The notes under the pieces were generated by a model. That model worked only from the letters and a program-made list of their open reading frames with translations. It was not told the origin of the DNA and made no database searches. 16,490 nucleotides of DNA, taken from assembly GCA_024626585.2 (NCBI GenBank), contig JANKJI020000002.1:69532388-69548877 (forward strand). The letters run 5' to 3'. Each line of letters begins with the position of its first letter. Position 1 is the first letter of the stretch. Source of the stretch: Ginkgo biloba (lineage: Eukaryota > Plantae > Ginkgophyta). The translations under genes and the position numbers were made by a program. Shown here in pieces: positions 1 through 16,490 of this stretch.

Positions 1-58
1 TTTTATTTCTCTTGGGTAAAAGGATTTTCTATTTTGAAAGGGCTCCCCATTGTTATAG

Positions 59-153
59 GCTAGAAAAACCAAGCAAAATTGACATTAAGGAAGGAAAGAA
101 CAAATTTACATGCTAGACAAACTAGGCAAATTTGACATAACAAGGGAAAGAAC
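59..153. repeat. Imperfect direct repeat, period 53 bp
   Basis: gctagaaaaaccaagcaaaattgacatt..ggaaagaac (59-101) versus gctagacaaactaggcaaatttgacata..ggaaagaac (112-153). Confidence 0.7.
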
Positions 154-1340
154 TAAGGGAATCAATGAAGAAATCTTTAAATGGATCCTATAGTTATTGA
201 TGGGTAGGGAAGATCTTATGGTCTATATATAGCTAATTAGCTATTATTTTTTAATAAACTTTTCAAAAATGAGATTCGCCAATATGTCAATTTAATGAAA
301 AATCTTAGTTTATTCGCCAAATTTATTTTAAACTATGAGCAAAACATTTATTTTACCAGTTCACTTATAATGTATATATTAGTTATTTTATATTGTAAAA
401 ATATTTGTAATTAATTATACTTATAAAAAATAAGTCAAACCTCAAGATTTTGTCTCCTGGTGGAATCACCANNNNNNNNNNNNNNNNNNNNNNNNNNNNN
501 NNNNNNNNNNNNNNAGAGTTCTCAAGAGAGATGATTGAGGTCTACTATAAGGCACCTCCACTCAGTGTGTGAGTTGTGTCAAATCCTCAATGGGCAACTC
601 TTAGGAACATAGGGCGATCCTAACCATTGCAAGTTAGCTCGTGGTGAAGTTATAGCAATCCAATTTGCCTTTAAAAGTAACCCTAGCACTTCAATTACAT
701 CCTTTAGCTTTCCTATACTTCAATTTTGGCTTGTACTCTATTCCACATTGATTGTAAAGGGGCTTAAGTATTGATTTTCTTATTTTGAGGATGGATAGAG
801 TTGATTCCAAGAAGTGCAACATGGCTTAGCATCAAAATCTTGCAATTTGCAGTATCGAGAGGCTACCAAATTAGTGCCAAGTGTAATGTGAAGTTTCTAG
901 GAGAGGAGCAACCCTCTTTAGGGCATTAATTGTTGCATATTGATGGTTGAAAATAAGAGAGTTTATTTTGTAGCTGTAATCTTCTTTGGATGTCAGGGAC
1001 TCCCCTATTCAATAGGATACAAATTTATTAAGTGGCCTTGAGCTATAAGTATGGTCAATCCACTTATTTGGAAGAATTTTCATGGTTATGTTACCATTTT
1101 CATATATGAACTTGTAATTGTAAAAGGGTGAAAAGAATATTGGGATTAGGGCACCTCTTTTCAAGCAGTACTNNNNNNNNNNNNNNNNNNNNNNNNNNNN
1201 NNNNNNNNNNNNNNNNNNNNNNNNNNNNNNNNNNNNNNNNNNNNNNNNNNNNNNNNNNNNNNNNNNNNNNNNTAGAAGGTTTTAGTCCTTTACTAGGCAT
1301 GTAGTGTAGGGCCCATGAACCTAAAGTTAGTAGAAGGTTT

Positions 1341-1502
1341 GAAAAGATACCCATAATTGATTGATGGCTATTTGGTTGGAAGAATATCCATGTTACATTT
1401 AGCCATTGGATTGAAACAATACCCATGAGTGATTGATGGCTATTGGGGTGAAACGATACCCATGTAGATTTGTTTAGGATTGCAAAGATACCTAGGATTG
1501 AT
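1341..1502. repeat. Degenerate minisatellite, about 36-bp unit with 72-bp higher-order period
   Basis: Units start gaaaagatacccat, ggaagaatatccat, gaaacaatacccat, gaaacgatacccat and gcaaagatacctag. Units 1 and 3 share tgattgatggctatt. Confidence 0.7.
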
Positions 1503-4023
1503 AATGCTTGTATATGATTATTTAATAATGTACCAATGCTTATATAACTACTAGATAAGGGACGAGCCTCCTTAAAGTATATATAGATTAGCAACCCTAT
1601 CTATGTACTTGTATGTGTTGAGGATTTAGAATGCTAATGCCTTGATGAGTGTTGGTGGAGCTTCTTATTTACAAGTGGTAAGTAGCAGATTTGTTATATT
1701 AAAGCATGTAAACTTGAGTTTTGTCTTGCTTATTAGGAGGGACAAGAGGATAATTGCACATGAGATGGCCTATAAGAGGGTTTGCATATTCATTGTCCTT
1801 GATTGGTCTATTTACCATTGTAGACAATGAGGAAGATGGCTCTAAAGCATAGCATAGTTGTATATTCTTTGCTTGAATAAAGTATTTTCTGTGTTGAGAA
1901 CTAAGGGGTTATCTAGCTCATCTTTGACTCATCTTATGTGCATATGAAGTGGCATATTTTAGGCATTTGTAGTCCATGGAGTTGGGTTAAGTAGCATTTG
2001 AAGGTCCAAGGCATGTTCTGTTTTGTGTTTTAGCTAGTTCTAGTTCATTCTATATGTTGCTAATTTCCATACAATTTATATCTATGTGCCTTTTATGATG
2101 GATTTAGAGCTCATGCGGTAGATTGTACAAGGCTTCAAGGGTGAGAGGAAACCCTTGTTAAGTGGAGCTGCATGTGGCATGGCATCTGTCAAAAGAAATT
2201 GGAACTTATAATGTATGGTTATTGCATCTTACAACCACACTTATCTTTTGCCATTTGTTAAAGTTTGGACTACAAAGTGTGCTCTTGTGATGATTGAATG
2301 TTTTGGCATGGAAATAAAGAGTTATGTCTACCCTCACTATCATGCTAAGATGGTAAGTGCATTTTGTTGTGGTTGTGGAATGCTTTACAACAACTCTGCA
2401 GATGGTTTGAAGGAATTTGTACTAATGGAGAAAAAGCCTGAGCACATATTGTACATGTGTCAAAGCATTGTGCCTAATGTAAAGCGGACTTGATTGGATT
2501 CTCTTGATAAATGTGCATGGAAATAGGTTCCCATGTGTTTTATGCATGTGTAGTTGCATAGATGATATAAATGTATGCTAGAATTCCATGTAGCCTCTGA
2601 ATTTCTTAGTAATAAGGCCAAGCTTGTGATAAATCTACTTGGGTTTGAATGCTATGTCATAGTCATGCATTCTTATTCTGGCCATGTGTTTCCACATATT
2701 GTTGTTCTCCCAATGTGGTTTTTACAGAACCTTTTGGGTAGTGTTGTTTTAGTTGAGTATTAAAATCATTATAGTTGATATGGGGTTGATCCTCTAAGGG
2801 TTGTACTAATTGAGACTCGCATTGGGTTTCCATTTGTTTTGAATGAAAATAATACCATAGTTGAAAAGTATGTTATGTAGAAAATTTCATTCCTATGAAT
2901 ATATATCTACTAAGAATCATATAAATAAAAATATTCTTTCTCTTCATATGTTCTATCATGAATGATTTTTAAGAGTGCTACCCTTGAAATTTGTAGAACT
3001 AACCACATCAAAGGTGAAATTGGTATCTTGCCCAATAGTCTAAGAAGTAATTGGATTAGAATTTATTTTACATCTACTTCATTCTCAATAGAGTTACCAC
3101 ATTTATTTAAACTTTAATATCAATGCATAACCTTGGTGTACCCCCAATGGATCAATCTTTTCATANNNNNNNNNNNNNNNNNNNNNNNNNNNNNNNNNNN
3201 NNNNNNNNNNNNNNNNNNNNNNNNNNNNNNNNNNNNNNNNNNNNNNNNNNNNNNNNNNNNNNNNNTAGGATAGTACAAGCCATGGCTCGTGTGAGCATTG
3301 TATGATTTAGAGGCATAGGACTATTGACAGTGAGGGGAGGGCTAGAACTCTCATAACCCTCAGGAGATGGTATTGTGCTATGAGGTGTGCTAGCACTCAT
3401 AGTGGGTCGTTCTTCTCAACTGACTGACATTGGTTTGTGCACTTGTGTTATTGCTTACATTTATTTACTATGCAGTCAATATGCCATATGCATGGAGATG
3501 AACGAGTGCCAAAAAGGAGTTGAAACAGAACTATGCCTATCACTCTTCTTTGTTGAAATCAAGCGGGGAGGCTGTTTGATGTTAATGGTTAACATTCATG
3601 CATCAGAGGTTTGGGTGGTAGCGATGCATCATGGCCAACAATGGTTGTTAGTTCATGTTGCCAAAACCATCCCTGCCCCTAGCAGTTTAGCTGTTTGAGT
3701 TTTGTATATGTTGACACCTCCAATACATCATGATTTAATATAAATGAATATTTTATGTATTTATTTATTCATGCATTGCACTCTGATGATTCATGTTTTC
3801 TATAAGCAATTAATATCTTTAGCATTAAGGGCTAAGAGGCAGGGCTGTTACAATAACATGTTTCAATGGAACACGTATAATTATCAATATAAAAAAATAT
3901 CAAATTATTTGATATTTCATTCTACATTTCATAAAGAACAAAAAGGAAATGATCCATTTAGCACATACCTTGCAGTTGCCCTTTCCAAACTTTATTGAGA
4001 TCTAACAGTATATTGTCTTGCAG

Positions 4024-4132
4024 TATGTCCGGCGACTTGGAACAATTGCTTCGTCTGATGAAAATGCGGAGGAGGCATGCCTTCGTCTGTTCTCTCATAT
4101 TTTTGCTCTTCATGTTGCTCATCTTACCACAG
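4024..4132 (+). CDS. Internal exon A of a divergent heme oxygenase-like gene (YVRRLGTIASSDENAEEACLRLFSHIFALHVAHLTT-G)
   Basis: Branch-like CTAAC at 4002-4006 and acceptor TTGTCTTGCAG ending 4023. Donor AG|GTTTTG at 4133. Open frame with several retained CpGs in a CpG-poor background. Ends in phase 1, matching exon B. HIFALHVAHLTTG aligns without gaps to plant HO1 HFYNIYFAHSAGG. Confidence 0.85.
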
Positions 4133-4497
4133 GTTTTGTGCTGCCCTTGTCTTCTCTGTAAAATTGAAAATGTAGCAGAAGCTAGCTTCTATCTATTAAA
4201 GTGGATTCTTCACATTATAGTCAAGTCATTCTTGTTATGATGAAATAATAATATGATTGGATAACCTATTTAACTCATGTGATTAAAGGAAGGTTGAGAT
4301 GGTATTATCTTTCATAATATCTTCTAATGAATATAATTCAACTATATCCTGCAAAAAATAATTGATCTCTTTCATATTTTTTAATCCATGAGATAGTNNN
4401 NNNNNNNNNNNNNNNNNNNNNNNNNNNNNNNNNNNNNNNNNNNNNNNNNNNNNNNNNNNNNNNNNNNNNNNNNNNNNNNNNNNNNNNNNNNNNNNNN

Positions 4498-5340
4498 GAT
4501 GGCCAGATTTTTTCGACAAGACCTCATTTTATGGAAACAAATTGGGATATATAAAACTCCAGAACCTGTGGCCTCCCACCCACTCTGCTCAAAAGCATAA
4601 AAAAGTAAAAACAATATCTTCCTCCTATTTCCAGACAATGCCCCATCGAAAAGCATAAAAGGTCTGTTCTTCTCTTCTGGGAGAAATCTCCCTCACATAA
4701 GATTTCATAGTAAATGTGTTTTGGTCAGTGGAAATTCCCTTCTTTTTTCATAAATTCAAGTTGAGCACATTTCTTTCATTCTCTGCAACGGTTGAAAGGG
4801 AGCTGTGAACGAGCTGCATCTATGGAAGAAATGTTTCTTTGTTTATGTAACAGTGTTTGAAGAGAAGTTTTGCAGGTATATTGTGCATCAAGACAGTGCC
4901 AAAGTTCCAAATACAAAAGTCCTTCTGTGGGAGTTGATTTTGGTATTTTTGTTTGTGGACATCTATGGGTACAAAATAGAGAGATTACTCAGATTAGTAA
5001 ATGATTTATATTTCTTGGTCAATCATAACTTTCTCCATCTTTGCCTATTTTCTGCACCAAATGCCTTGTCAGGTCTAAAATGTGGATGGATTCAATTTAC
5101 GTCTGCTCATGAGAAATGTTCTCAGAATTTACTCCAAAGAACTTTGTTTCAGTAGATGATGAGAAAGAATTCAAGAATTTTGGACCAAATGTGTTTTCTT
5201 TTTCCAAAATTTCTGTCCTTATTTTGTTTACATTGCTTCATTTGCAGGTCTAACCTTAGACAAAGTATCAGCTATTGTTTTCAGATAAATTCAACCTGCT
5301 TCCGATCTTCTTTCTCTACCTCGAATCTAATGCATTCTAC
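4498..5340 (-). mobile_element. Possible highly decayed LINE ORF2 3' remnant (RNase H-like FDGA motif)
   Basis: Minus strand reads ..RPFMLFDGALSGN.. (FDGA at 4639-4650) and later ..GSGVLYI.., resembling plant LINE RNase H FDGASQG..GAGGVLY. Flanks are too degraded to confirm. Confidence 0.25.
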
Positions 5341-7980
5341 CTCACATCTAGTGCATTTAGTTTAGTTTTGAAAGCATGAATTCAGTGTTGGAAATGCTTG
5401 TTAGGTTTACTGCTATGTCAAATCGCTTCTTTGCCCATTGATGTCTTTCATTGTATCTTGAAATAATTGCCACTTGAATGTTATGTGTTGACACATTGCT
5501 ACAAGCCATGCACACACATACAAAAGAAAGCAGTTATATATGTTCCAGCTCCCTACTCCCTGCTTGTAGGAACCTGCATATGCAGAACTCGAGCATGGGT
5601 TAGTACAATACATGAGGCACTTGGTGGTTTTCATTAAGGCTTTGATTGTTAGGGCATTGGATCAACAGCATCTCCAACATTGTAGGCCTTATAATATTAT
5701 ATACTAGATGATCCTCCAACCACAGGCAAGAATCTGTCCTGCTCCCCCTTACATGGTGGGAATGGATACACAAGCATTACATACCATGCTATTTTCCATT
5801 GCCTACCCAGGCTTTACATGTTGGCAATGCCTCCAACAGGCCTTACATGTGTGTGGTGCTACTTTATTCAACCACAGAGGTCGGTGCCTGTTGAGCCCTT
5901 GTCCAGCCAAGTAGGTCGGTCTGAGATAGCTATTACCTTACAAGGTCTATTTTAGAGGCAATACAATATGGAGATGCATGTTGGACCTTTGTCCACTAGC
6001 AATACAAGTTCAATGATCAAGGCCATGCATTAAATCAATCATTCACTATAGAAGTTAGACACAACTTGTACTGCGGTGCACATAGTTCAATTCAACACTG
6101 ATGTATATTAATTTATGACAGATTCATCAAGCATAGAGTTATACAGTGCGCACTTATGCATAGTTTTCTGCTTATCTAATTGCACTAATTACCATCACAA
6201 TGAATTCTGAAATCTGAACAGAAAGAAGACAAAGGACAAAAAGTTAAAACCTTCTGAAAATCTGCAATAAATTCAGAAGTACATCTGTTGTTACATATGT
6301 ACAGCTATGATTAGATATGATTAAGGTTGTACGCCTGCTAGTACAGATGTATAGTATTAACAGTCCTCTTTGCCACCCATCGCTCATTATTATTGTCATA
6401 AATGCTGATTGGATTCATTTATTTGAAGACAGTATTACTGCTATACTGGTTAATCAGAATCTTGGTCCTACAGGCCATTAATGATAAATATGATTTGTCC
6501 TTCATAATTGCCATCTCCCTCTACAGTAAAGGCTTCTGTACTGTAATAAATGCAGTCCATGGGTTGTTTTTGGATACATCTCTGCCTTAAGAGGATAAGA
6601 ATATCTCATGTGCTCCTAGCACTACCACAATTATCGCCATCTATTGGGATGGCATTGGATAGTTCAACAAACCTCTCCACCACCTGGGGCTACACAGTCA
6701 TTGCAGTTTCTAGTCTTTGCACAACAAACCCTACTCTAGCCTTCTCCTCCTCAACCTTCTCAAAGTTTAACACTAGGGTCTTCTCATCTGTATGTGGTTA
6801 GTGTACATAGGGATAAGAAAAACAAACTAACAATACTACTGGATCAAGCCTCCAAGAAAGTTGGAAAGTTGAAGAAAGAACCTTGAAACATTTGGACTCG
6901 ACTGCTTGTTCAAGAAATAGTTGCTCCATTTGAAAATTGTGGTGTAAAATCGAGCATGGTCTAGTAGAGAATCATGCAAACTCCTACAGCATTGTGTAAA
7001 CAGATAGATGCACTGNNNNNNNNNNNNNNNNNNNNNNNNNNNNNNNNNNNNNNNNNNNNNNNNNNNNNNNNNNNNNNNNNNNNNNNNNNNNNNNNNNNNN
7101 NNNNNNNNNNNNNNNNNNNNNNNNNNNNNNNNNNNNNNNNNNNNNNNNNNNNNNNNNNNNNNNNNNNNNNNNNNNNNNNNNNNNNNNNNNNNNNNNNNNN
7201 NNNNNNNNNNNNNNNNNNNNNNNNNNNNNNNNNNNNNNNNNNNNNNNNNNNNNNNNNNNNNNNNNNNNNNNNNNNNNNNNNNNNNNNNNNNNNNNNNNNN
7301 NNNNNNNNNNNNNNNNNNNNNNNNNNNNNNNNNNNNNNNNNNNNNNNNNNNNNNNNNNNNNNNNNNNNNNNNNNNNNNNNNNNNNNNNNNNNNNNNNNNN
7401 NNNNNNNNNNNNNNNNNNNNNNNNNNNNNNNNNNNNNNNNNNNNNNNNNNNNNNNNNNNNNNNNNNNNNNNNNNNNNNNNNNNNNNNNNNNNNNNNNNNN
7501 NNNNNNNNNNNNNNNNNNNNNNNNNNNNNNNNNNNNNNNNNNNNNNNNNNNNNNNNNNNNNNNNNNNNNNNNNNNNNNNNNNNNNNNNNNNNNNNNNNNN
7601 NNNNNNNNNNNNNNNNNNNNNNNNNNNNNNNNNNNNNNNNNNNNNNNNNNNNNNNNNNNNNNNNNNNNNNNNNNNNNNNNNNNNNNNNNNNNNNNNNNNN
7701 NNNNNNNNNNNNNNNNNNNNNNNNNNNNNNNNNNNNNNNNNNNNNNNNNNNNNNNNNNNNNNNNNNNNNNNNNNNNNNNNNNNNNNNNNNNNNNNNNNNN
7801 NNNNNNNNNNNNNNNNNNNNNNNNNNNNNNNNNNNNNNNNNNNNNNNNNNNNNNNNNNNNNNNNNNNNNNNNNNNNNNNNNNNNNNNNNNNNNNNNNNNN
7901 NNNNNNNNNNNNNNNNNNNNNNNNNNNNNNNNNNNNNNNNNNNNNNNNNNNNNNNNNNNNNNNNNNNNNNNNNNNNNNNN

Positions 7981-8010
<30 letters not shown>
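7981..8010. repeat. (TC)n microsatellite abutting the 965-N gap
   Basis: About 15 TC units visible; probably continues into the gap. Confidence 0.95.
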
Positions 8011-8014
<4 letters not shown>

Positions 8015-8037
8015 AGGGTAGAACTTAGTGCCTATTT

Positions 8038-8501
8038 TGACGAGGTTATCCCTAAACATTTTGTAGAAGGATGGGTTCAACCTTAGCCATTGGTTGCAAA
8101 TTAACCGGGCACCACTTGGGGATTACGCGAACAACACCTAGGTGTTGCTTGGGGGTTTGCTCGGGGATTAATATTTTTGGTGATTATCTTATATATCGAG
8201 GGTTGGTCATCAATGATTAGGTGTGTCAACTATGACCAACAACCACTCACCTACATGTACAATGGGTGCTATAAAGACCTCCCCTTCATTTTGTGATAGC
8301 ATCGTCATCGTGCATATACTTGACTTCATTATTGACAATTCCCTATGTATTCATGTATTCCTTGGATGATCAGTAATACATATCATTGTTGCTATAGCCT
8401 GATGTCTTGTGTGTATATGATTGCTCTCAGTGATTGTCAACAACAATCCCCAAACCCTTAATTTTGATTTAGATCCATAACTTAGGAATCTATACTCAAC
8501 A
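8038..8501 (+). mobile_element. Solo-LTR-like remnant (about 460 bp)
   Basis: Ends ...CTCAACA. Candidate decayed start TGACGAG, two mismatches from TGTTGAG. Internal TATAAA at 8270-8275 followed by a pyrimidine run. No target-site duplication (TSD) visible and the 5' boundary is uncertain. Confidence 0.45.
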
Positions 8502-8519
8502 AGGGCCTTCCATCTTGTT

Positions 8520-9090
8520 TTATTTGAGCAACTAATGTATTCAGCATCAAATATCTGAAAAGTGAATGACTACACATTTGGCACCTCTCAACAGCCCCAA
8601 AGAATTTATCTTGCAGATCTCCTTGACAGAGACACAACACAGGAAAGGCCCAAGTGTTCCCTAACTTTTTATGTGGCCCGTGAAATTAGCTTTATGGACC
8701 TTTCTCCACATTAACATGCTTGTTTTGGGTTGTCTTCATTTGTCCCAGATGAATTTTCAGACGCTGCCCATCTCTATTATTTCATTTAGAATGGATATTG
8801 AAGCTCCTTATAGAAATCTTTCCAATTGAACTCTTTTCCTAGTGATTGCCTTCATGAACTTTCTCTCTTTTGTTTTGTCAAATTTTCTCTCCAATTTCCC
8901 ATTATGATGTGCTGAGAAGCATGTCAATAGCCTTCAACTCATCTAGGGATCGTGGTGTCGACAAGCTCTCTAGGATTTCCCTACTTAGCCAAGCTCCTCC
9001 TTTCAAGCACAGTCCCAATCCATTAATTTTATCTTTGATTACTTGAAGCCCTCTCTTTTGATAGGATAGCCAAAAACCCTCCATTTGTAA
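8520..9090 (-). mobile_element. Decayed L1-type LINE ORF2 fragment including a zf-RVT domain remnant
   Basis: Minus strand from 8759 reads *KFIWDK*RQPKTSMLMWRKVHKANFTGHIKS*GTLGPFLCC, matching the zf-RVT pattern WKxIW..PK...W......RG..GP..C. Upstream FWLSYQKRGLQVIKDKI resembles the post-RT region of plant LINEs. In-frame stops are present. Confidence 0.6.
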
Positions 9091-9277
9091 TCACAAAAGT
9101 TAGTGCAAACCCATGTATACATCTATTCTAGCATATTTATGAGAGTAGATAATGTCAGCTTTCATTACGAGGTTTCAAGGTTCCTTGTATTAAGCTTTGC
9201 CACCTATCATAGTATGAATGCTTACACAATTATGTTTTTATCTGTGGTTGATAAGGGTAGTGGATTTTCATGTACAG

Positions 9278-9363
9278 GAATGCGAATTGGTGTCAAAGCT
9301 GTGGCTTCCTTGCCATCAATGGTTGGAGGAAAGGCTGTTAATTTCTATCGTGATTATCCCCAG
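9278..9363 (+). CDS. Internal exon B of the heme oxygenase-like gene (G-MRIGVKAVASLPSMVGGKAVNFYRDYPQ)
   Basis: Acceptor TTTTCATGTACAG ending 9277 and donor CAG|GTATCA at 9364. Phase-1 start completes the Gly codon from exon A. GMRIG...NFY matches plant HO1 GRMIG...EFY. This is the tail of the supplied ORF 9103..9384. Confidence 0.85.
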
Positions 9364-9777
9364 GTATCAATTTTTTTTTGTTGAAAAGGTGGTGTTGTTG
9401 CAATTTTTATTTCTTTATTGGAAATGCTTGAAATATAATTTGACTTGGTGTAAAACCCCAGTAGTTGAGAAACCATCTTGACGCAGGTTTGAACAAACAT
9501 ATTTTGATCACTAGTGACTGTGACCCTTCTTGCCATCTAAACCCAGGCTAATGATTTAGGAGGAGCATCCCGAATCATTGCAGCAAATCATTGTTTAGTT
9601 GATCCTTTCTCATTTGGTTGTTGTTGCTTCAAGGGAAAGTACACAAGGTTTATGAATGGATGGGGAGATGAGAAGTTGGGAACCTTGTTGTGTATATCAC
9701 TGCTAATGCTTTATACTTAAACATGAAGTATGCAAGGATCTAATGCTTGGGATTTCTTGTGTAATGTGTCTGAGCAG

Positions 9778-9861
9778 CAAGCTTCGGATCCTCTCAAAGT
9801 GTTCATTGAAGCTGTAAACAGAGCTGGTAAATTCCTTACTTCAGAGGATGATCGTGAAAAG
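9778..9861 (+). CDS. Internal exon C of the heme oxygenase-like gene (QASDPLKVFIEAVNRAGKFLTSEDDREK)
   Basis: Branch-like CTAAT near 9740 and acceptor GAGCAG ending 9777. Donor AAG|GTACAA at 9862. 84 nt, phase 0/0. Aligns to HO1 [27 protein letters not shown]. Confidence 0.8.
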
Positions 9862-9974
9862 GTACAATAAGAAGTTTTGTTCTTTCTGAAAGGCATTTCG
9901 TTTGTTTGCAAGTTACTGTAACTTTTTGTAGTTGCTTAAAGTCATGTTATGTTTTTATCACGTTGAAAAATCAG

Positions 9975-10043
9975 ATCATGCTGGAACTTCCAAAAGCTAT
10001 CCAAAAGACGAGCTTACTTCTAGCAGTTCTTGCTGTGGAGTAA
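9975..10043 (+). CDS. Terminal coding exon D of the heme oxygenase-like gene (IMLELPKAIQKTSLLLAVLAVE*)
   Basis: Follows a 113-nt T-rich intron (9862-9974) ending TCAG. Phase 0, TAA at 10041-10043. Length and hydrophobic pattern match the last HO helix (HO1 CLEETEKSFKYSGEILRLILS*). Confidence 0.8.
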   Translation: MMLELPKAIQKTSLLLAVLAVE

Positions 10044-10099
10044 TTTTTCCTTTGCACATTTTCCTTGCACTTGGTTGTCTTTATAAATTACTATTGTTT

Positions 10100-10105
10100 A
10101 ATAAA
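10100..10105 (+). promoter_or_regulatory. Candidate polyadenylation near-upstream element AATAAA
   Basis: AATAAA about 57 nt after the stop codon in U-rich 3' sequence. The hexamer is common in AT-rich DNA. Confidence 0.3.
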
Positions 10106-10430
10106 TATCAGCTCCAGTAGCTATGTATTTCATGTATTTTTTTGTTTCCTTCTAGTGGCAATCATAAATCCAATGTCCTTTTATTACAATTATATGTTGG
10201 AGTTANNNNNNNNNNNNAGACACAGGCTACTGCAAACAGCAAGAACTTTGTCTTCGCAACAAATTGAATGAGAGAGTTGGAATTTTTGTCTACTCTATTC
10301 TCACATTATTGCCAGCTGTACTGATCTAGAAAGCAGTTTATTATTGAAAGCAATCCATCCTGTTCTTTGACTCCTTTAGGTCTTCAGCAAGGCATCCTAT
10401 CCAGAGTAGAGCCTTATCATGAACGTTGGC

Positions 10431-10873
10431 AATATATTCATGAAAAATCACAGTTTCCTGGTCTCCTGACATNNNNNNNNNNNNNNNNNNNNNNNNNNNN
10501 NNACAAATAACATGATCCATTGATCATAATTGAGTTTATTTAATGATCTTGCTATCAGTTTATAATGATTAGATTTACCTGGTGAATATCAGTTTGGATT
10601 TAATGTATCCTGCAACCTCCAATATATGCTGCAACAAGAAGTTCATGTTTTTATGATTAAATATATTCATGAAAAATCACATTTCCGGGTTCTCCTGACA
10701 TTTAGCATGTGCCATGGATAACATGATCCATTGATCTCAATTGAGTTTATGTAACGATCTTGCTTTCAGTTTACGATGGCTAGATTTATCTGGTGAATAA
10801 CAGTTTGGATTTAATGTATCTTGCAACCTCCAATATACTGCAAAATGAAGTTCATGTTTTTATGATTAAATAT
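10431..10873. repeat. Tandem duplication, two copies of about 210 bp (10431-10659 and 10660-10868)
   Basis: Both copies run from aatatattcatgaaaaatcac to gaagttcatgtttttatgatta with scattered substitutions. Copy 1 contains a 30-N gap. Confidence 0.95.
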
Positions 10874-13225
10874 GTTTGAAAACTAAAATTAATTATGTTT
10901 TAAATGCCTCCCAATAATCCAAGATTGGAGAATGCGGACAGTAGAGACAATTTGGAGGATTTTGCATTGGAAAGTCATTGATGAATTTCTATAACATGTT
11001 GCTGCCAAATTCCTCTCAAGAGGAAGACAGCTCGGCATGAAGTATGTGGTAGGCTTTCTTGGAAATTTATTGCCAATGAAATAATACTTCCTATGCGTCT
11101 AGTCTTGGAACGTATATCCTTTTGACTGTTCAATTTCTTGTGATATTTGTTCTTTTTAGAAAATGGCCTTTCCCTTATACTACCTTGAGCTTGGTAGGCG
11201 ACATGTTACAGGCTCTTACCTCTTGTAAAAAACTGCATACAAATGCATCTCCAAGTATCAGTCGAGCATTAGAGCAAGCATATCATTCTATGGGTAGTAC
11301 CTAGACGATAAACTAGTGTGATGGAATCACATCTAATCCAATAAAACATTAGAATAGTAGATTTGTTCCAAGGCTGTAGCCATTATCTGTAAAAAGCTCA
11401 AGGCAAGAAAACTCATGACCAACTTTTAGGGTCTAACACCCTACAGGGTTATTCACATGGCTCCAAATGTAAAACCTTAGTATCCCTAAAGACTTTTAAG
11501 AGTGCCCAGCTATCTTTCATACTATATTCCACTTGTGCAACCATCTTGTTCCATTGTAACCTCTTTGGTAGTACCCTTTGTTATAGACAAATAATAGAAG
11601 CAAGGCAGCTCTAGGCCTGTTCTGATCCGATATGTCTCATTCATATCAGTGGATCGTCCCTCTCTAGCAAACCTTAAGCTGGATATCTTTCAAGGTGGTG
11701 TTGCCACACAACCTTATCAGAAGCTATCTTTTCAGTTGGTATTGTCATTCAACAGTTTTAATACATATAATGCGAACAAACAACTTAAAACATGCCACAT
11801 TTTGAGTTGGTAGCAAGCATTAATAAATGTTCAATCATTATCCTTTCCTCTTCTTTTATGCTATAGATAAGGACAATCATAATTCTTGCTGACACATAAA
11901 AAATTGTGAGCATTGGCCCTCTAACACACATGGATATAAATAATGAGGATTTGAGTCCTCTTGTACTATGTATGCTTTCAGCCATAAAGAATAAAACCAA
12001 TAAGAAGGCCTGTTTTCAAGCACCTCTTGCAAGGCATCAAAATGCTTAAAGAAAGAAAAGCCTAAAAAAGCATGGCAATCCCTGGACTAATTAAAATGCA
12101 ATCATTTAACCTAGGATAAAACCTCAGTGCAATTTAAGTCATGTAGAGCATAGCAATAATCTGTCATAACAAGACATTACCACCTTAGGCAAAATGGCAT
12201 GTATAGGGNNNNNNNNNNNNNNNNNNNNNNNNNNNNNNNNNNNNNNNNNNNNNNNNNNNNNNNNNNNNNNNNNNNNNNNNNNNNNNNNNNNNNNNNNNNN
12301 NNNNNNNNAATGGCATGTATAGGGTACATCAATACTTTGGAAATTATGATGAGAAAAATCTTAATGTTTTCAAGCTTCAAACTATCGCTAGTCATTGAGA
12401 AAGAATAACAGTCCCTTAGGCATATGAGATATAGTAAACTCTTCATGTAAGAACAATGCACATGTTTCGAAACCAAAAAACATTTTTTTAACCATGCAAA
12501 AAGCATAACAATGCTCCCTAATGAACAAAATATACAGTTTTTCATGGTTGTACTCACATGTAGACTTGTCTTGGGAAGATATGCCTGCCTTACACCTTGT
12601 TGAGTTCAAACCCCATTGTTGACCATGAAAGCAAGTTGCTACAACGCTCTCAAAATCAGGTTTTAAAACTCGCTAACAACTAACGCAATTGCTAAATCTT
12701 GAGATAGGGTTTATAAACCAATTTGCGCAAATGGTAGGTTAGAGAAGCTCTTGTGATGCAAAAATTTCCCTACTAAGGGGATTGCTCTTATTTGGAAGCC
12801 TATAAGGCTTGTACAAATGTCCAACAAATCTCTTTTAGTAATTCAACCTCTTTTAAGGCAATATGGAAGCAATTCAAAATTCTTCTTGGGGCAACATAAT
12901 AAAGTATAGGTGAAAATGATGAAGGTAGGTTGTGACAACAATTCATAAAAAGTGTTTCTATGTTTATCTGTAGCCAAGTAATTTGTGATGCACTTAATTT
13001 TTCGATACAATGGCCAAGTTGGCTATGTTGTTATGATGTCAGGGAGATGTCACCATTGCACTGTGAAAGCTACATGACGACCAACTATAGAATGGTCATT
13101 TTTTTTTTATACGACGTTTATTTAGTTCCCTTTACCACTCATTTTGAATGAATATTGAGGCTTACATATTTGACATATTTGACATAAAGATTTAAGGGGG
13201 AGATGGCATTTAATAATTGACCGAG

Positions 13226-13586
13226 TGTTGATGGATTTTGAGACACATGTATAGATAATGATATATGATTTAGATCATACCCAATTCCCACCTCAGATTG
13301 TAGGAAATTCAAGAAGAAGTTAGAATAGGTAATTGGTCAAGTAGTTTATCAATGATAACTATATCCATTGTATAAATATCTTGTTGTTTATTGTAATTGT
13401 ATGAGCGTTGGTTTGGGGATTTAGATTATGACAAGTAAGTTTTTATTCTCTACTATAATAAATAATGATGATTCTTACCTACTGCTCGTGTTAATGTGTG
13501 GATGATGATGTGTTCAATTTGATAGTTAATATAGATGGTAGATCGTAGGTAACACATGGTTTGTAGGGTGCTAAAACCATCCAACA
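13226..13586 (+). mobile_element. LTR-like element (361 bp) with TG...CA termini
   Basis: Starts TGTTGATGGATTTTGAGACAC. Reverse complement of the end is TGTTGGATGGTTTTAGCAC. TATAAAT at 13371 and AATAAA at 13457. Polypurine tract (PPT)-like AAGGGGGAGA at 13194-13203. No clean TSD. Confidence 0.65.
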
Positions 13587-13657
13587 TTGGTTCGATTGCC
13601 TTTTATGAACTCGTTTCTCACTATAACAATTTGTGAGAACAAAATGGATGACTTCTA

Positions 13658-14026
13658 CCATTGTATGTGATGCACTCTAGTTGACCTAGGGGCATCAACC
13701 TTCTTAAGGGATTGTTCAAAATCTATTGATTCAATGGATCACATTAAATCAGATCACAATATTGTTGTAGTTTATCCTTCATATGCACCCTTAGCCATTA
13801 ACTACATGTCCACTTTATCTATCAATTTCTCATTATTCTCAACCAAGGCATCTATAATAACATCCTATGCACTAGTGTTCCTTTTTACATTAAACCAATT
13901 ATTCTCATATTTCAAATTAACAATATTTCCCTCATTTGGAATTCCAAATAGGCCATGTATTAATCTTCCATCAATCCTCATATACTTGTTTCTCAAAATA
14001 GTATCACCAGTTTACATTACAAGATA
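13658..14026 (-). pseudogene. Decayed TE-associated ORF fragment
   Basis: One minus frame stays protein-like but has several stops. It contains RIDGRLIHGLFGIPNEG (13928-13978), similar to the IxxxxIxxxxGLPxxG motif of plant-mobile-domain and retrotransposon accessory ORFs. Confidence 0.35.
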
Positions 14027-15139
14027 AGTTCTTTGACCAAATTTGTATGGCATACTAGCCTTTGAACTACCAACATTAGATGAATATGTGATTATTCCAC
14101 TCATTTTTGAAAGTTTATTCATTTGCATTCAATTGATGTACCAACATAATATTTGTTGATTCTTTATTATATTTATCCCATTCTTTTAGGATTGCATAAT
14201 CAAATACCACATTCATATAATCTTCCATGTCTTATAGAATAATTTCCACCAAGATCATCCTAAGTACCATTTTTCTTTTCACAAAATTTATCCCAACTAT
14301 CAGAGTAATTTCTAAAATCAACTTTGAATTTAAATCAAGATTAGAAATAATTTCCACCAATAAATTTATCTTTAAAATAATTGTTGTAAGCAAATTTATT
14401 TTTCAAATCATAATTCTTGGTTGTGATGGCATCTAATATTTAAATATTAGTCATATTACATTCTTATCACACTTATTATGCCTTTTTTAAGGGTTTTTTC
14501 ATTCGAATTCACTGCATTAAAGGTTCCATGGTGTTTGTATATATTTCCATTATTTTTACATCAAAGTCATTGATTTACATATCCAATATCAATATTTTAC
14601 CGTATTTGCAAGGTTCTCCTTATTCTCAAACTTTGAAACTTTTTGTGTGACATGGTCATTTCCTCAAAATAATACTTAGTCATAATTTTTACTTTATTTT
14701 GTATATTTTATCCTATTTAATCAATATGTCACTATTTGTGAATCATCTCTTATTAGTCACATCACTTTCACCATTCACACGAGCTTCCCAATTTTTGGAC
14801 AATGAATCATCTTTCACGACTTGAACTTTTATTTTAACTTCTTTGTAAAAAAATCCAAGTGTAATAATACATTTCTCACTTAAACACTTTGATAATTGTT
14901 TAGTTTACTTTCTTGAAAGTGATTATCTAACCCTTAGTTAAGATCAATACTTAAACACTCTTCCTTGATCATTTTCATTTGATCCTTTGCTAAAATATNN
15001 NNNNNNNNNNNNNNNNNNNNNNNNNNNNNNNNNNNNNNNNNNNNNNNNNNNNNNNNNNNNNNNNNNNNNNNNNNNNNNNNNNNNNNNNNNNNNNNNNNTG
15101 TTGGAAAAAGAAGATGCAATTATAAAATACTCATCCAAA

Positions 15140-15208
15140 AAAGATGCCATCTATAAGTAGAAGGGGAGGCAAATCCATATAACAAGCCATTTTATAGATG
15201 GCATCTTT
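15140..15208. repeat. Perfect 17-bp inverted repeat with 35-nt spacer
   Basis: aaagatgccatctataa (15140-15156) and ttatagatggcatcttt (15192-15208). Confidence 0.9.
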
Positions 15209-15652
15209 CCAAAACTAAATCGGTCAAAACTTATAGTTTCCTCTATATATTTATATATTTAGCCTCGTCAAAATTGAGAGCCAAATGGTTATATTCTATT
15301 TGTCAAAAGTCACTCATGAAATATATGAAATGATGACCAACTATCTGGAGTACCTCTCTTTAATATTTATAAAAATGATATGAATGACTCTACTAAAGCA
15401 TGAAAGAAGAAAAAGGCTTATTATAACATGATTTATATGGAATATTCTGTGTGATGTTGCATAATCACATTATAAAGAGGAAAGAGACATTTTACTTGAA
15501 GGATGAGAGTTGAGAATTATGTGTGTGTTATGTGTTGGAGTTATTGAACATCTTAATGGAGAGTTGTTTAAGTTCTATATAGGTCTTTCACTTTGAAGTC
15601 ATTGATGTACTTATGAATGGATGCATTTCTAATCTATCCATTTGATTGCCTA

Positions 15653-16464
15653 ACAACATTGGCTCAATAGCTAGTGTGGGATTTTATGACAACCAATACA
15701 ATGGTTAAAATGGAAAGAAAATATAAGAGCAATCCAATCTATGAAAACAACTATAAATAAGAATAAGCCTCCTCTAATGTAAATTGTCAATAGTAGTAGT
15801 AGAATCTACATACCATTTTTATCATGGGAAACCAAACCATCAACTTGAAAACATAAATGGTGATCAATAGCATTTGTGTGCATCTTACTAACCATCTCTT
15901 TACAAGCAAAAAATATGAAATATTTATTAAGTCAATGAGCATAATGTACAATCACATACACCAAAACTTTATAAGTAATAAAAAACATACATGGAAGAGT
16001 TGAACTTATAGCATTCACTCTAGAATAAGAATTAATTATTATGTCACCTCTCATCTTGACAAGGTCTTTACAACATCATCTCAATAGTCAATAGGGGATA
16101 TTGTGACAAACATATAATGCTTTAAATGGTAATAAAATATAAGAACAATTTAAACTAAGAAACAACTATAAATAATCATAAACCTCCTCTAACATAAATT
16201 ATCAATAGCAATAGTAAAATTTGCATACTTATGTCATCATCAACTTGCAAACATGAATCATGGTGGTCAATAACACTTGTATGCATCTCATTAGCTAGTT
16301 CTTAACAAGACAAAAATACGACACATTTAATAAGTAAATGAATGTAATTTATAATCACATACACAAAAAGTAATTATGAAGATACCTGGAAGAGTTAAAC
16401 TCATAATGTGCAGCCTAAAATAATAATTCATTACCATGTTGCTTCCTATCTTGCCAAGGGCTTC
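15653..16464. repeat. Old tandem duplication, two diverged copies (about 417 and 395 bp)
   Basis: Colinear shared blocks acaacat..ctcaatag, aaaatataaga, aaacaactataaataa, cctcctctaa, catcaacttg, aatcacatacac, tggaagagtt and atcttg.caagg in 15653-16069 and 16070-16464. Confidence 0.9.
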
Positions 16465-16490
16465 ACAATACACATTTGTTTTTAGCCACA

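Follow-up and report, generated by a model that had tools for sequence, protein, structure and literature searches.

We analyzed a stretch of 16,490 nucleotides from Ginkgo biloba (GenBank assembly GCA_024626585.2, contig JANKJI020000002.1, positions 69,532,388 to 69,548,877 of the forward strand), hereafter referred to as the window, in which four exons between positions 4024 and 10043 encode the C-terminal 115 amino acids of a protein related to heme oxygenase (HO). These exons are spliced and expressed, the protein is homologous to plant HO1, its sequence is conserved throughout a family of orthologues and the exons are under purifying selection. We consider it likely that this real, transcribed Ginkgo gene represents an unstudied streptophyte subfamily of HO-fold proteins, the members of which would most likely bind tetrapyrroles in a non-canonical manner. 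In plants, HOs have been divided into two subfamilies (HO1 and HO2); the locus would reveal a third, ancient lineage of the HO fold with an altered active site.

Splicing and expression of the four exons

Every exon boundary in the forward-strand region 4024-10043 carries the canonical GT/AG signals, with junction phases of 1, 0 and 0, and the joined exons yield a peptide of 36+1+28+28+22 = 115 amino acids that ends with a TAA stop codon at 10041-10043. The first junction splits a codon (g|ga, GGA) that encodes Gly, and the remaining two are in phase 0. Our RNA evidence came from two contig sets (X1 and X2) and from two raw polyA RNA-seq runs (X23 and X24), with 6% of each raw run being sampled. 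The joint from 4132 to 9278 (GT..AG, skipping 5145 nucleotides) is carried by X1 and X2 contigs as well as by X23 and X24 raw polyA reads, the joint from 9363 to 9778 (skipping 414) was found in all four runs, and that from 9861 to 9975 was found in X2 and X24. An earlier reading of the window from its letters alone (the sequence-only reading) had proposed these coordinates, splice sites, phases and the 115-residue peptide, and had named reads across the three junctions as the check to be made. All of these are confirmed in the sequence and in the RNA, with each of the three joints having been found as GT..AG.

The first of the exons, the fourth from last in the gene (4024..4132), encodes YVRRLGTIASSDENAEEACLRLFSHIFALHVAHLTT and the first base of the Gly codon. 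Its product (reading YVRRLG..AHLTT) covers the helix ahead of the distal one as well as the beginning of the latter, including both conserved His residues. Besides the RNA joint and a tblastn match (E 6.5e-12), the exon is supported by six X23 reads and an 879-nucleotide X2 contig that are clipped at 4022-4024 and that continue upstream, in frame, with ..STTQAIAYAK. As these clipped reads carry the end of the upstream exon, the acceptor at 4024 is confirmed. Intron 1 (4133..9277; GT..AG, phase 1) holds two assembly gaps, at 4398-4497 and 7016-7980, and its length of 5145 nucleotides should thus be considered nominal. The following exon (9278..9363) encodes (G)MRIGVKAVASLPSMVGGKAVNFYRDYPQ (MRIGVKAV..FYRDYPQ), that is, the remainder of the distal-helix motif HLTTGMRIG together with the FYRDY motif, and is supported by RNA joints and by tblastn (E 3.4e-10). 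Beyond intron 2 (9364..9777; GT..AG, phase 0), which is spliced in four runs, the exon at 9778..9861 encodes QASDPLKVFIEAVNRAGKFLTSEDDREK (QASDPLKV..DDREK), again with support from RNA joints and tblastn. Intron 3 (9862..9974; GT..AG, phase 0) measures 113 nucleotides, and the last coding exon (9975..10043), supported by an RNA joint and tblastn, encodes IMLELPKAIQKTSLLLAVLAVE, corresponding to the terminal helix, followed by TAA. The C-terminus that this exon encodes is almost identical among orthologues.

When the entire window was searched by tblastn with the orthologous protein of Cryptomeria japonica, the exons were returned at E values of 6.5e-12, 3.4e-10 and 3.5e-16 and no other match was found at E < 1, such that the exon matches cannot be attributed to chance. 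Both gaps fall within intron 1, and this should be considered when judging whether the first exon belongs with the others. Of the gymnosperm orthologue P0004, residues 266-301, 303-330, 331-358 and 359-380 correspond to the four exons, with residue 302 being the split Gly. As P0004 is collinear across all junctions and as RNA joins 4132 to 9278, no coding residues are hidden by the gaps, and the sides flanking them belong to one transcript, ordered and in frame.

Some RNA from the region does not follow this splicing pattern. In X1, two contigs (9775-9921 and 9919-10009) read through intron 3. Translation of this form would end at a stop codon two codons past the exon (..REKVQ*), without the terminal helix; these contigs reflect either a retained-intron isoform or pre-mRNA. 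Within intron 1, a few X24 reads lie at 5010-5409, and one X2 contig aligns to 5673-5693 and to 5822-5848, the two parts being separated by 115 different letters, which suggests a repeat copy located at another genomic site. The source of the intron 1 reads at 5010-5409 and 5673-5848 is probably a transposable-element remnant.

Fold and homology to heme oxygenases

Fold, profile and structure analyses were performed on stored orthologues (P0003 being the Cryptomeria protein), while Ginkgo itself was examined exon by exon. Single Ginkgo exon peptides compared with Pfam and PDB sequences gave nothing useful, as such peptides are too short. The family profile, when searched against the PDB, returned only two matches, namely 7eqh (Arabidopsis HO1; E 5.4e-9) and 7cka (soybean HO-1; E 3.2e-8). 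The alignment of the profile with 7eqh spans the entire window-encoded region and is residue-level through the distal helix and the FY motif. PF01126, the HO family of Pfam, was matched below threshold by 10 of 29 orthologues (best E 7.7e-5) and was the sole Pfam family matched by many members. No member reached the Pfam threshold for PF01126, the precomputed Pfam field was empty throughout, and P0001 and P0002 gave no match.

The AlphaFold2 model of P0003 presents a predicted local distance difference test (pLDDT) score of at least 89 over residues 259-373, i.e., the part that corresponds to the window-encoded peptide. In a Foldseek search of the PDB with this model, the best 50 matches were all HOs, with plant HO1 being first. 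Using VIA-align, residues 126-372 of the model were superposed on residues 71-282 of 7eqh_A with a Z-score of 21.9 and an rmsd (root-mean-square deviation) of 2.8 over 204 of 212 residues. The Z-score was 21.3 for 7cka, 17-19 for other HOs, including Plasmodium PfHO, and 13.5 for the diiron HO-like N-oxygenase HrmI. In addition, the language-model neighbours of the family in the ESM Atlas were all PF01126 clusters. The predicted P0003 structure thus has the HO fold, which is that of a single all-alpha domain with heme placed between the proximal and distal helices. The sequence-only reading had spoken of a highly divergent HO-fold protein, and both parts of this description held, the fold by the profile matches to plant HO1 and the model superposition, and the divergence by the exon peptides lacking a Pfam match and by the sub-threshold PF01126 matches of the orthologues.

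Family members, conservation and selection

A phmmer search with the 36 residues of the first exon against 1.84 billion representative sequences returned two proteins, one of which was from Cryptomeria japonica. Searches with the Cryptomeria protein and with the family profile then yielded about 35 relatives. Even with the E limit relaxed to 0.1 for the profile, or to 10 for a C-terminal region from Riccia, all matches belonged to the family. The named members come from gymnosperms and ferns (Cryptomeria, Taxus, Ginkgo, Adiantum and Ceratopteris), from lycophytes and mosses (Selaginella, Diphasiastrum, Physcomitrium, Ceratodon and Sphagnum) and from liverworts and zygnematophyte algae (Marchantia, Riccia, Calypogeia, Spirogloea and Closterium). 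Among the loci are LOC131037351 in Cryptomeria, MPTK1_6g20090 in Marchantia, SELMODRAFT_413620 in Selaginella and LOC112282303 in Physcomitrium. In databases, the orthologues appear as 'uncharacterized' or 'hypothetical' and, for some in UniRef, under the automatic name 'heme oxygenase (biliverdin-producing)'. A search of the literature, including by locus tags, returned no paper on this HO-like family.

Of the 5.8 billion proteins searched, no named match was of angiosperm origin, and ten Logan-derived matches carry no species name. It should be noted that the C-terminal motifs are long exact words, which an angiosperm orthologue would be expected to share. The lack of a flowering-plant member among the named matches would explain why model-plant genetics missed the family. 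In the family tree, liverworts, mosses, ferns and conifers form supported groups, and this arrangement by plant lineage fits vertical descent. The existing partial Ginkgo model (P0037) has no firm place in this tree, as its spurious segments give it a long branch.

Residues that are invariant in an alignment of 26-29 members include H283, H291, G295, R297, G299, F317, Y318, Y321 and E350 (P0003 numbering). The Ginkgo exons keep all of the family-invariant residues of the C-terminal half, with two distal-helix His residues, TTG, MRIG, FYRDY and the terminal helix. The family motifs YAKY, HLTTGMRIG, FYRDY and ELPKA.Q.TSLL are present in this order, with the YAK of the first motif being contributed by the upstream sequence in the RNA reads (..AIAYAK). 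Compared with P0004, Ginkgo presents 72% amino acid identity over 114 codons. An exon-by-exon count against the gymnosperm cDNA L003, likewise over 114 codons, gave 0.17 nonsynonymous (dN) and 0.65 synonymous (dS) substitutions per site, i.e., a dN/dS ratio of 0.26. Against a moss cDNA, synonymous sites were saturated. The dN/dS ratio, the retained invariant residues and the conserved intron positions (see below) support purifying selection on the Ginkgo exons, which bears out the earlier suggestion that the gene is under selection.

These results should be considered together with the possibility that the exons belong to a decaying pseudogene, are chance open reading frames (ORFs) or were brought together by scaffolding across gaps. 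The many assembly gaps, the low expression, the broken published gene model and the retention of intron 3 in one run could all be taken in this sense. Nonetheless, independent studies, and also data under a second organism label, show precise GT..AG splicing, the frame is intact with all invariant residues and with the low dN/dS given above, the intron positions are common with those of Marchantia, and the orthologue alignment remains collinear across the gap-bearing intron. The pseudogene or artefact explanation is thus already contradicted, and we give it hardly any weight.

A second explanation is that the exons are part of an ordinary Ginkgo HO1 or HO2 orthologue, which appears divergent only because a short C-terminal piece was read. 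The homology to plant HO1 is indeed real, as the profile matches to 7eqh and 7cka demonstrate, HO2 likewise lacks the His ligand (PMC9433822), and the ranges might be complementary, with HO2 being found in angiosperms and the present family elsewhere. The full-length orthologues are, however, only about 20% identical to Arabidopsis and soybean HO1 (AtHO1 and GmHO1), and all members lack a precomputed Pfam domain and remain under the PF01126 cut-off. Invariant motifs specific to the family and an N-terminal extension (about 90 residues), moreover, set it apart, and the Glu/Asp-rich spacer of HO2 is missing from it. The YAKY and SH..SI..SH patterns, for their part, appear somewhat nearer to AtHO2 than to HO1. 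Against an ordinary orthologue also stands the lack of any named angiosperm match, with ten of the matches being from unnamed assemblies. Marchantia, to which a single HO gene has been ascribed (10.1101/2023.10.30.564862), also carries a gene of the present family (P0018). We therefore consider an ordinary HO1 or HO2 to be highly improbable. The family's own invariant motifs, its wide phyletic range and the absence of a paper on it among the literature searched argue instead for a separate, uncharacterized subfamily, as the sequence-only reading had suspected. The comparison of sequences lends indirect support to a putative third plant HO-like subfamily beside HO1 and HO2, with the separation from HO2 relying on the published description of the latter.

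Several observations concern individual members of the family. A region ahead of the HO domain (residues 1-125 of P0003) is found family-wide and includes KGFG, a Lys-rich stretch, IDPxVAAKGKVDFVRVESWG and LENLKxKSFSP; in the AlphaFold model, it is predicted with a pLDDT of less than 50, and no Pfam family matches it. An insignificant first HMMER domain pairs the family KGFG with the KGF of AtHO1, which lies just before the proximal helix. Compared with P0003, the Cryptomeria isoform X4 (P0001, 325 amino acids) is without the second long helix of the HO fold (48 residues), and it appears to be an exon-skipped product that would be unable to fold as an HO. Riccia fluitans and R. sorocarpa have several full and partial copies (P0020, P0026, P0031, P0035, P0036 and P0038), some of which are fused to unrelated domains (C2H2 and TPR), which looks like local duplication and fragmentation.

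Active site and proposed function

In AtHO1, heme is ligated by His86, and a distal hydrogen-bond network involves Tyr116, His206, Tyr230, Lys225-Leu227 and Lys231 (PMC9433822). When aligned to 7eqh by HMMER, the Ginkgo exons retain His206 (in AHL), Tyr230 with the preceding Phe (in NFY) and Lys231, the latter as Arg. The Lys225-Leu227 segment (K-E-L) is represented by K-A-V, with Lys225 being kept, and the earlier His of the distal helix is also retained (SHIF). The residues of the distal network of canonical HOs, as listed in the above reference, are thus found in this alignment. Two other features of canonical HOs are different. The glycine-rich segment of the distal helix, AHSAGGRMIG in HO1, is AHLTTGMRIG in the family, where it is invariant from Closterium to Ginkgo; the first Gly of the GG pair is replaced by Thr, such that Ginkgo and all other members read AHLTTG. 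The proximal helix of the orthologues (PFYExLVxRLQLLESKG), in turn, has no conserved His. Here, Gln138 is nearly invariant and position 141 is either Glu or Asp.

Heme cleavage is abolished when the His ligand is lost, as in AtHO2, and when distal glycines are substituted in human HO-1. From the retained equivalents of AtHO1 Tyr116, His206, Tyr230 and Lys231, we infer that the protein keeps the tetrapyrrole pocket of HOs. The missing proximal His and the change from AHSAGG to AHLTTG, in contrast, point to a non-canonical function, in that heme would most likely not be cleaved in the canonical way. The role may then be one of tetrapyrrole binding, with the protein serving in sequestration or regulation, similar in kind to the inactive HO2 of Arabidopsis and PfHO of Plasmodium. 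The location of the protein is probably the plastid.

This proposal of a non-canonical tetrapyrrole binder has some drawbacks that need to be considered. Expression is low, with a depth of about 1-2 in the sampled 6% of each raw run. The proximal helix of the Ginkgo protein lies outside the window, and the statement on the missing His is thus that of the orthologues. The register of the ligand is ambiguous, as the corresponding position may be Gln138 (from RLQ versus RLH and from the spacing to a conserved Trp) or Glu141, the latter being obtained from a gapless reading of the structural range 126..372 versus 71..282. Plastid targeting is a guess from the look of the N-termini, and tetrapyrrole binding is predicted from sequence for all family members alike. 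Finally, a catalytic function could explain equally well why the distal network is kept and HLTTGMRIG so strongly conserved.

This last point leads to a further explanation, in which the protein would be a functional enzyme whose chemistry is non-canonical, either a tetrapyrrole oxygenase with Gln or Glu as axial ligand or an HO-like diiron oxidase. Apart from the distal network, the invariance of HLTTGMRIG from algae to Ginkgo is more than a passive binder would seem to need, the dN/dS ratio is low, and a diiron N-oxygenase, HrmI, appears among the structural matches. HO-like diiron enzymes are expected to need about three His residues and three carboxylates on the core helices. The polar residues that are invariant in the family, however, include only two His and two carboxylates, one being Asp and the other Glu (the rest being Tyr, Lys, Arg and Gln), and thus fall short of a diiron ligand set, both His residues go back to plant HO1, in which they do not bind metal, and HrmI is matched at a Z-score of 13.5, as compared with 17 to 22 for true HOs. 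For a tetrapyrrole oxygenase, the loss of activity in AtHO2 and in human HO-1 mutants upon His-ligand loss and distal-glycine substitution should likewise be considered. We view an active enzyme as rather unlikely, and tetrapyrrole binding as the preferred function.

A more specific version of tetrapyrrole binding is that the family serves as a dedicated handler of a non-heme tetrapyrrole, such as Mg-protoporphyrin or protochlorophyllide, in a pathway that angiosperms discarded. A Mg-tetrapyrrole would suit the site, as Gln or Glu in place of His would provide an oxygen ligand. The apparent range of the family, from streptophyte algae to gymnosperms and without angiosperms, resembles that of light-independent protochlorophyllide reduction. 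We give this version little credence; if true, the family would supply an accessory factor that has so far been missing from dark chlorophyll synthesis or from the control of this process. As Marchantia and Physcomitrium carry the gene and as it can be readily knocked out in both, a role in tetrapyrrole metabolism or signalling is directly testable.

Extent of the gene and existing annotation

The four exons are the last four of a larger gene, of which a 5' part coding for about 265 amino acids lies beyond the window. The description of the locus in the sequence-only reading as a four-exon gene should thus be revised to the 3'-terminal four exons, as the window lacks the upstream exon seen in the clipped reads (..STTQAIAYAK). 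In Marchantia, the gene consists of nine exons, and its last four introns coincide exactly in position with those of Ginkgo (..YAK|Y.., ..HLTT(G)|MRIG.., ..FYRDYPx|.. and ..EQ|VM..); the window probably contains exons 6-9 of nine. The 30-nucleotide end of the upstream exon, as derived from the clipped reads, is absent from the window, even when two mismatches are allowed or when 11- or 12-mers are used, and tblastn of full-length orthologues against positions 1-4023 revealed no upstream exon. As neither the upstream end nor orthologue matches were found there, the 5' exons are placed outside the window, with the gaps at 472-514, 1173-1272 or 3166-3265 being a less likely location. Such a position is to be expected for a window of 16 kb, as the orthologous gene of Taxus spans about 175 kb.

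The locus is overlapped by a 2016 gene model, Gb_14732 (P0037 in our set, from EukProt; 159 amino acids), which maps at 100% to 8921-9010, to the true exons 2-4 of the window and to two stretches of intron 2. The first exon of the model (8921..9010, forward strand), to which residues 1-30 of P0037 match at 100% in tblastn, is false, as it has neither RNA depth nor a joint. Its two pseudo-exons inside intron 2 (about 9541-9645 and about 9727-9777, forward strand) are unsupported by any RNA joint. A 254-nucleotide X2 contig (depth 3.2) at 9413-9665 lies entirely within intron 2 and is colinear with the genome; it reflects unspliced precursor or DNA in the run and may have misled the model. Gb_14732 is a mis-spliced and truncated model, the real exon upstream is 4024-4132, and replacement of the model is warranted. 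The present exons thus correct the Ginkgo annotation. The gene had been called hidden in the sequence-only reading, which is true insofar as its splicing was missed by the annotation, but Gb_14732 does overlap the locus and orthologues are already found in databases.

Downstream of the stop codon, a likely polyadenylation signal (AATAAA, 10100..10105, forward strand) is seen in the sequence, 57 nucleotides past the stop. In the remainder of the window (10044-16490), no convincing coding sequence was found; the four ORFs of at least 70 amino acids in this part are of low complexity or span gaps.

Comparison with known systems

The closest known proteins are plant HO1 (HY1/GUN2/HO1 of Arabidopsis, 7EQH, and the soybean protein, 7CKA). 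With these, the family shares the all-helical HO fold (Z-scores of 21.9 and 21.3), and its profile matches at E 5e-9. In the C-terminal half, helices and motifs succeed one another in the same order. Equivalents of Tyr116, His198, His206, Ile213-Gly214, Phe229-Tyr230 and Lys231, the latter as Arg, are also shared. The family differs from plant HO1 in its sequence identity of about 20%, in having no conserved proximal His and in presenting AHLTTG in place of AHSAGG. It also has an extra conserved N-terminal region of about 90 residues (KGFG..IDPxVAAKGKVDFVRVESWG..LENLKxKSFSP), remains below the PF01126 threshold and includes no angiosperm member among the named matches.

The HO2 subfamily is defined by a His-to-Arg change and by a Glu/Asp-rich spacer after the proximal helix (PMC9433822). 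Like Arabidopsis HO2, the present family consists of plant HO-fold proteins without the His ligand, likely pseudo-enzymes, and the proposed tetrapyrrole binding or regulation would be the same in kind. In contrast to the published description of HO2, the ligand position is occupied by Gln or Glu rather than Arg, and the segment that follows the proximal helix (KGDIKIVQAKPLPPFERW) contains no acidic spacer. Furthermore, HO2 is an angiosperm protein that is recognized by standard HO models, while neither is true of the family.

Precedent for pseudo-HOs is provided by AtHO2 and by PfHO of Plasmodium falciparum (PMC11634067). PfHO has lost the His ligand, is targeted to an organelle, carries an N-terminal extension that has a separate role and serves in apicoplast gene expression (PMC11634067). 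The family resembles this apicoplast protein (8ZLD) in the HO fold (Z-score of 18.4, rmsd of 2.5), in the loss of the His ligand, in the N-terminal extension and, by the guess made above, in organelle targeting. The two differ in lineage and have no detectable sequence relationship, and nothing in the family suggests nucleic acid binding. Lastly, HO-like diiron oxidases and oxygenases, such as HrmI (9N1E), share the broad helical scaffold with the family; the similarity is lower (Z-score of 13.5), the full set of diiron ligands is not conserved and the family is, instead, homologous to canonical HOs.

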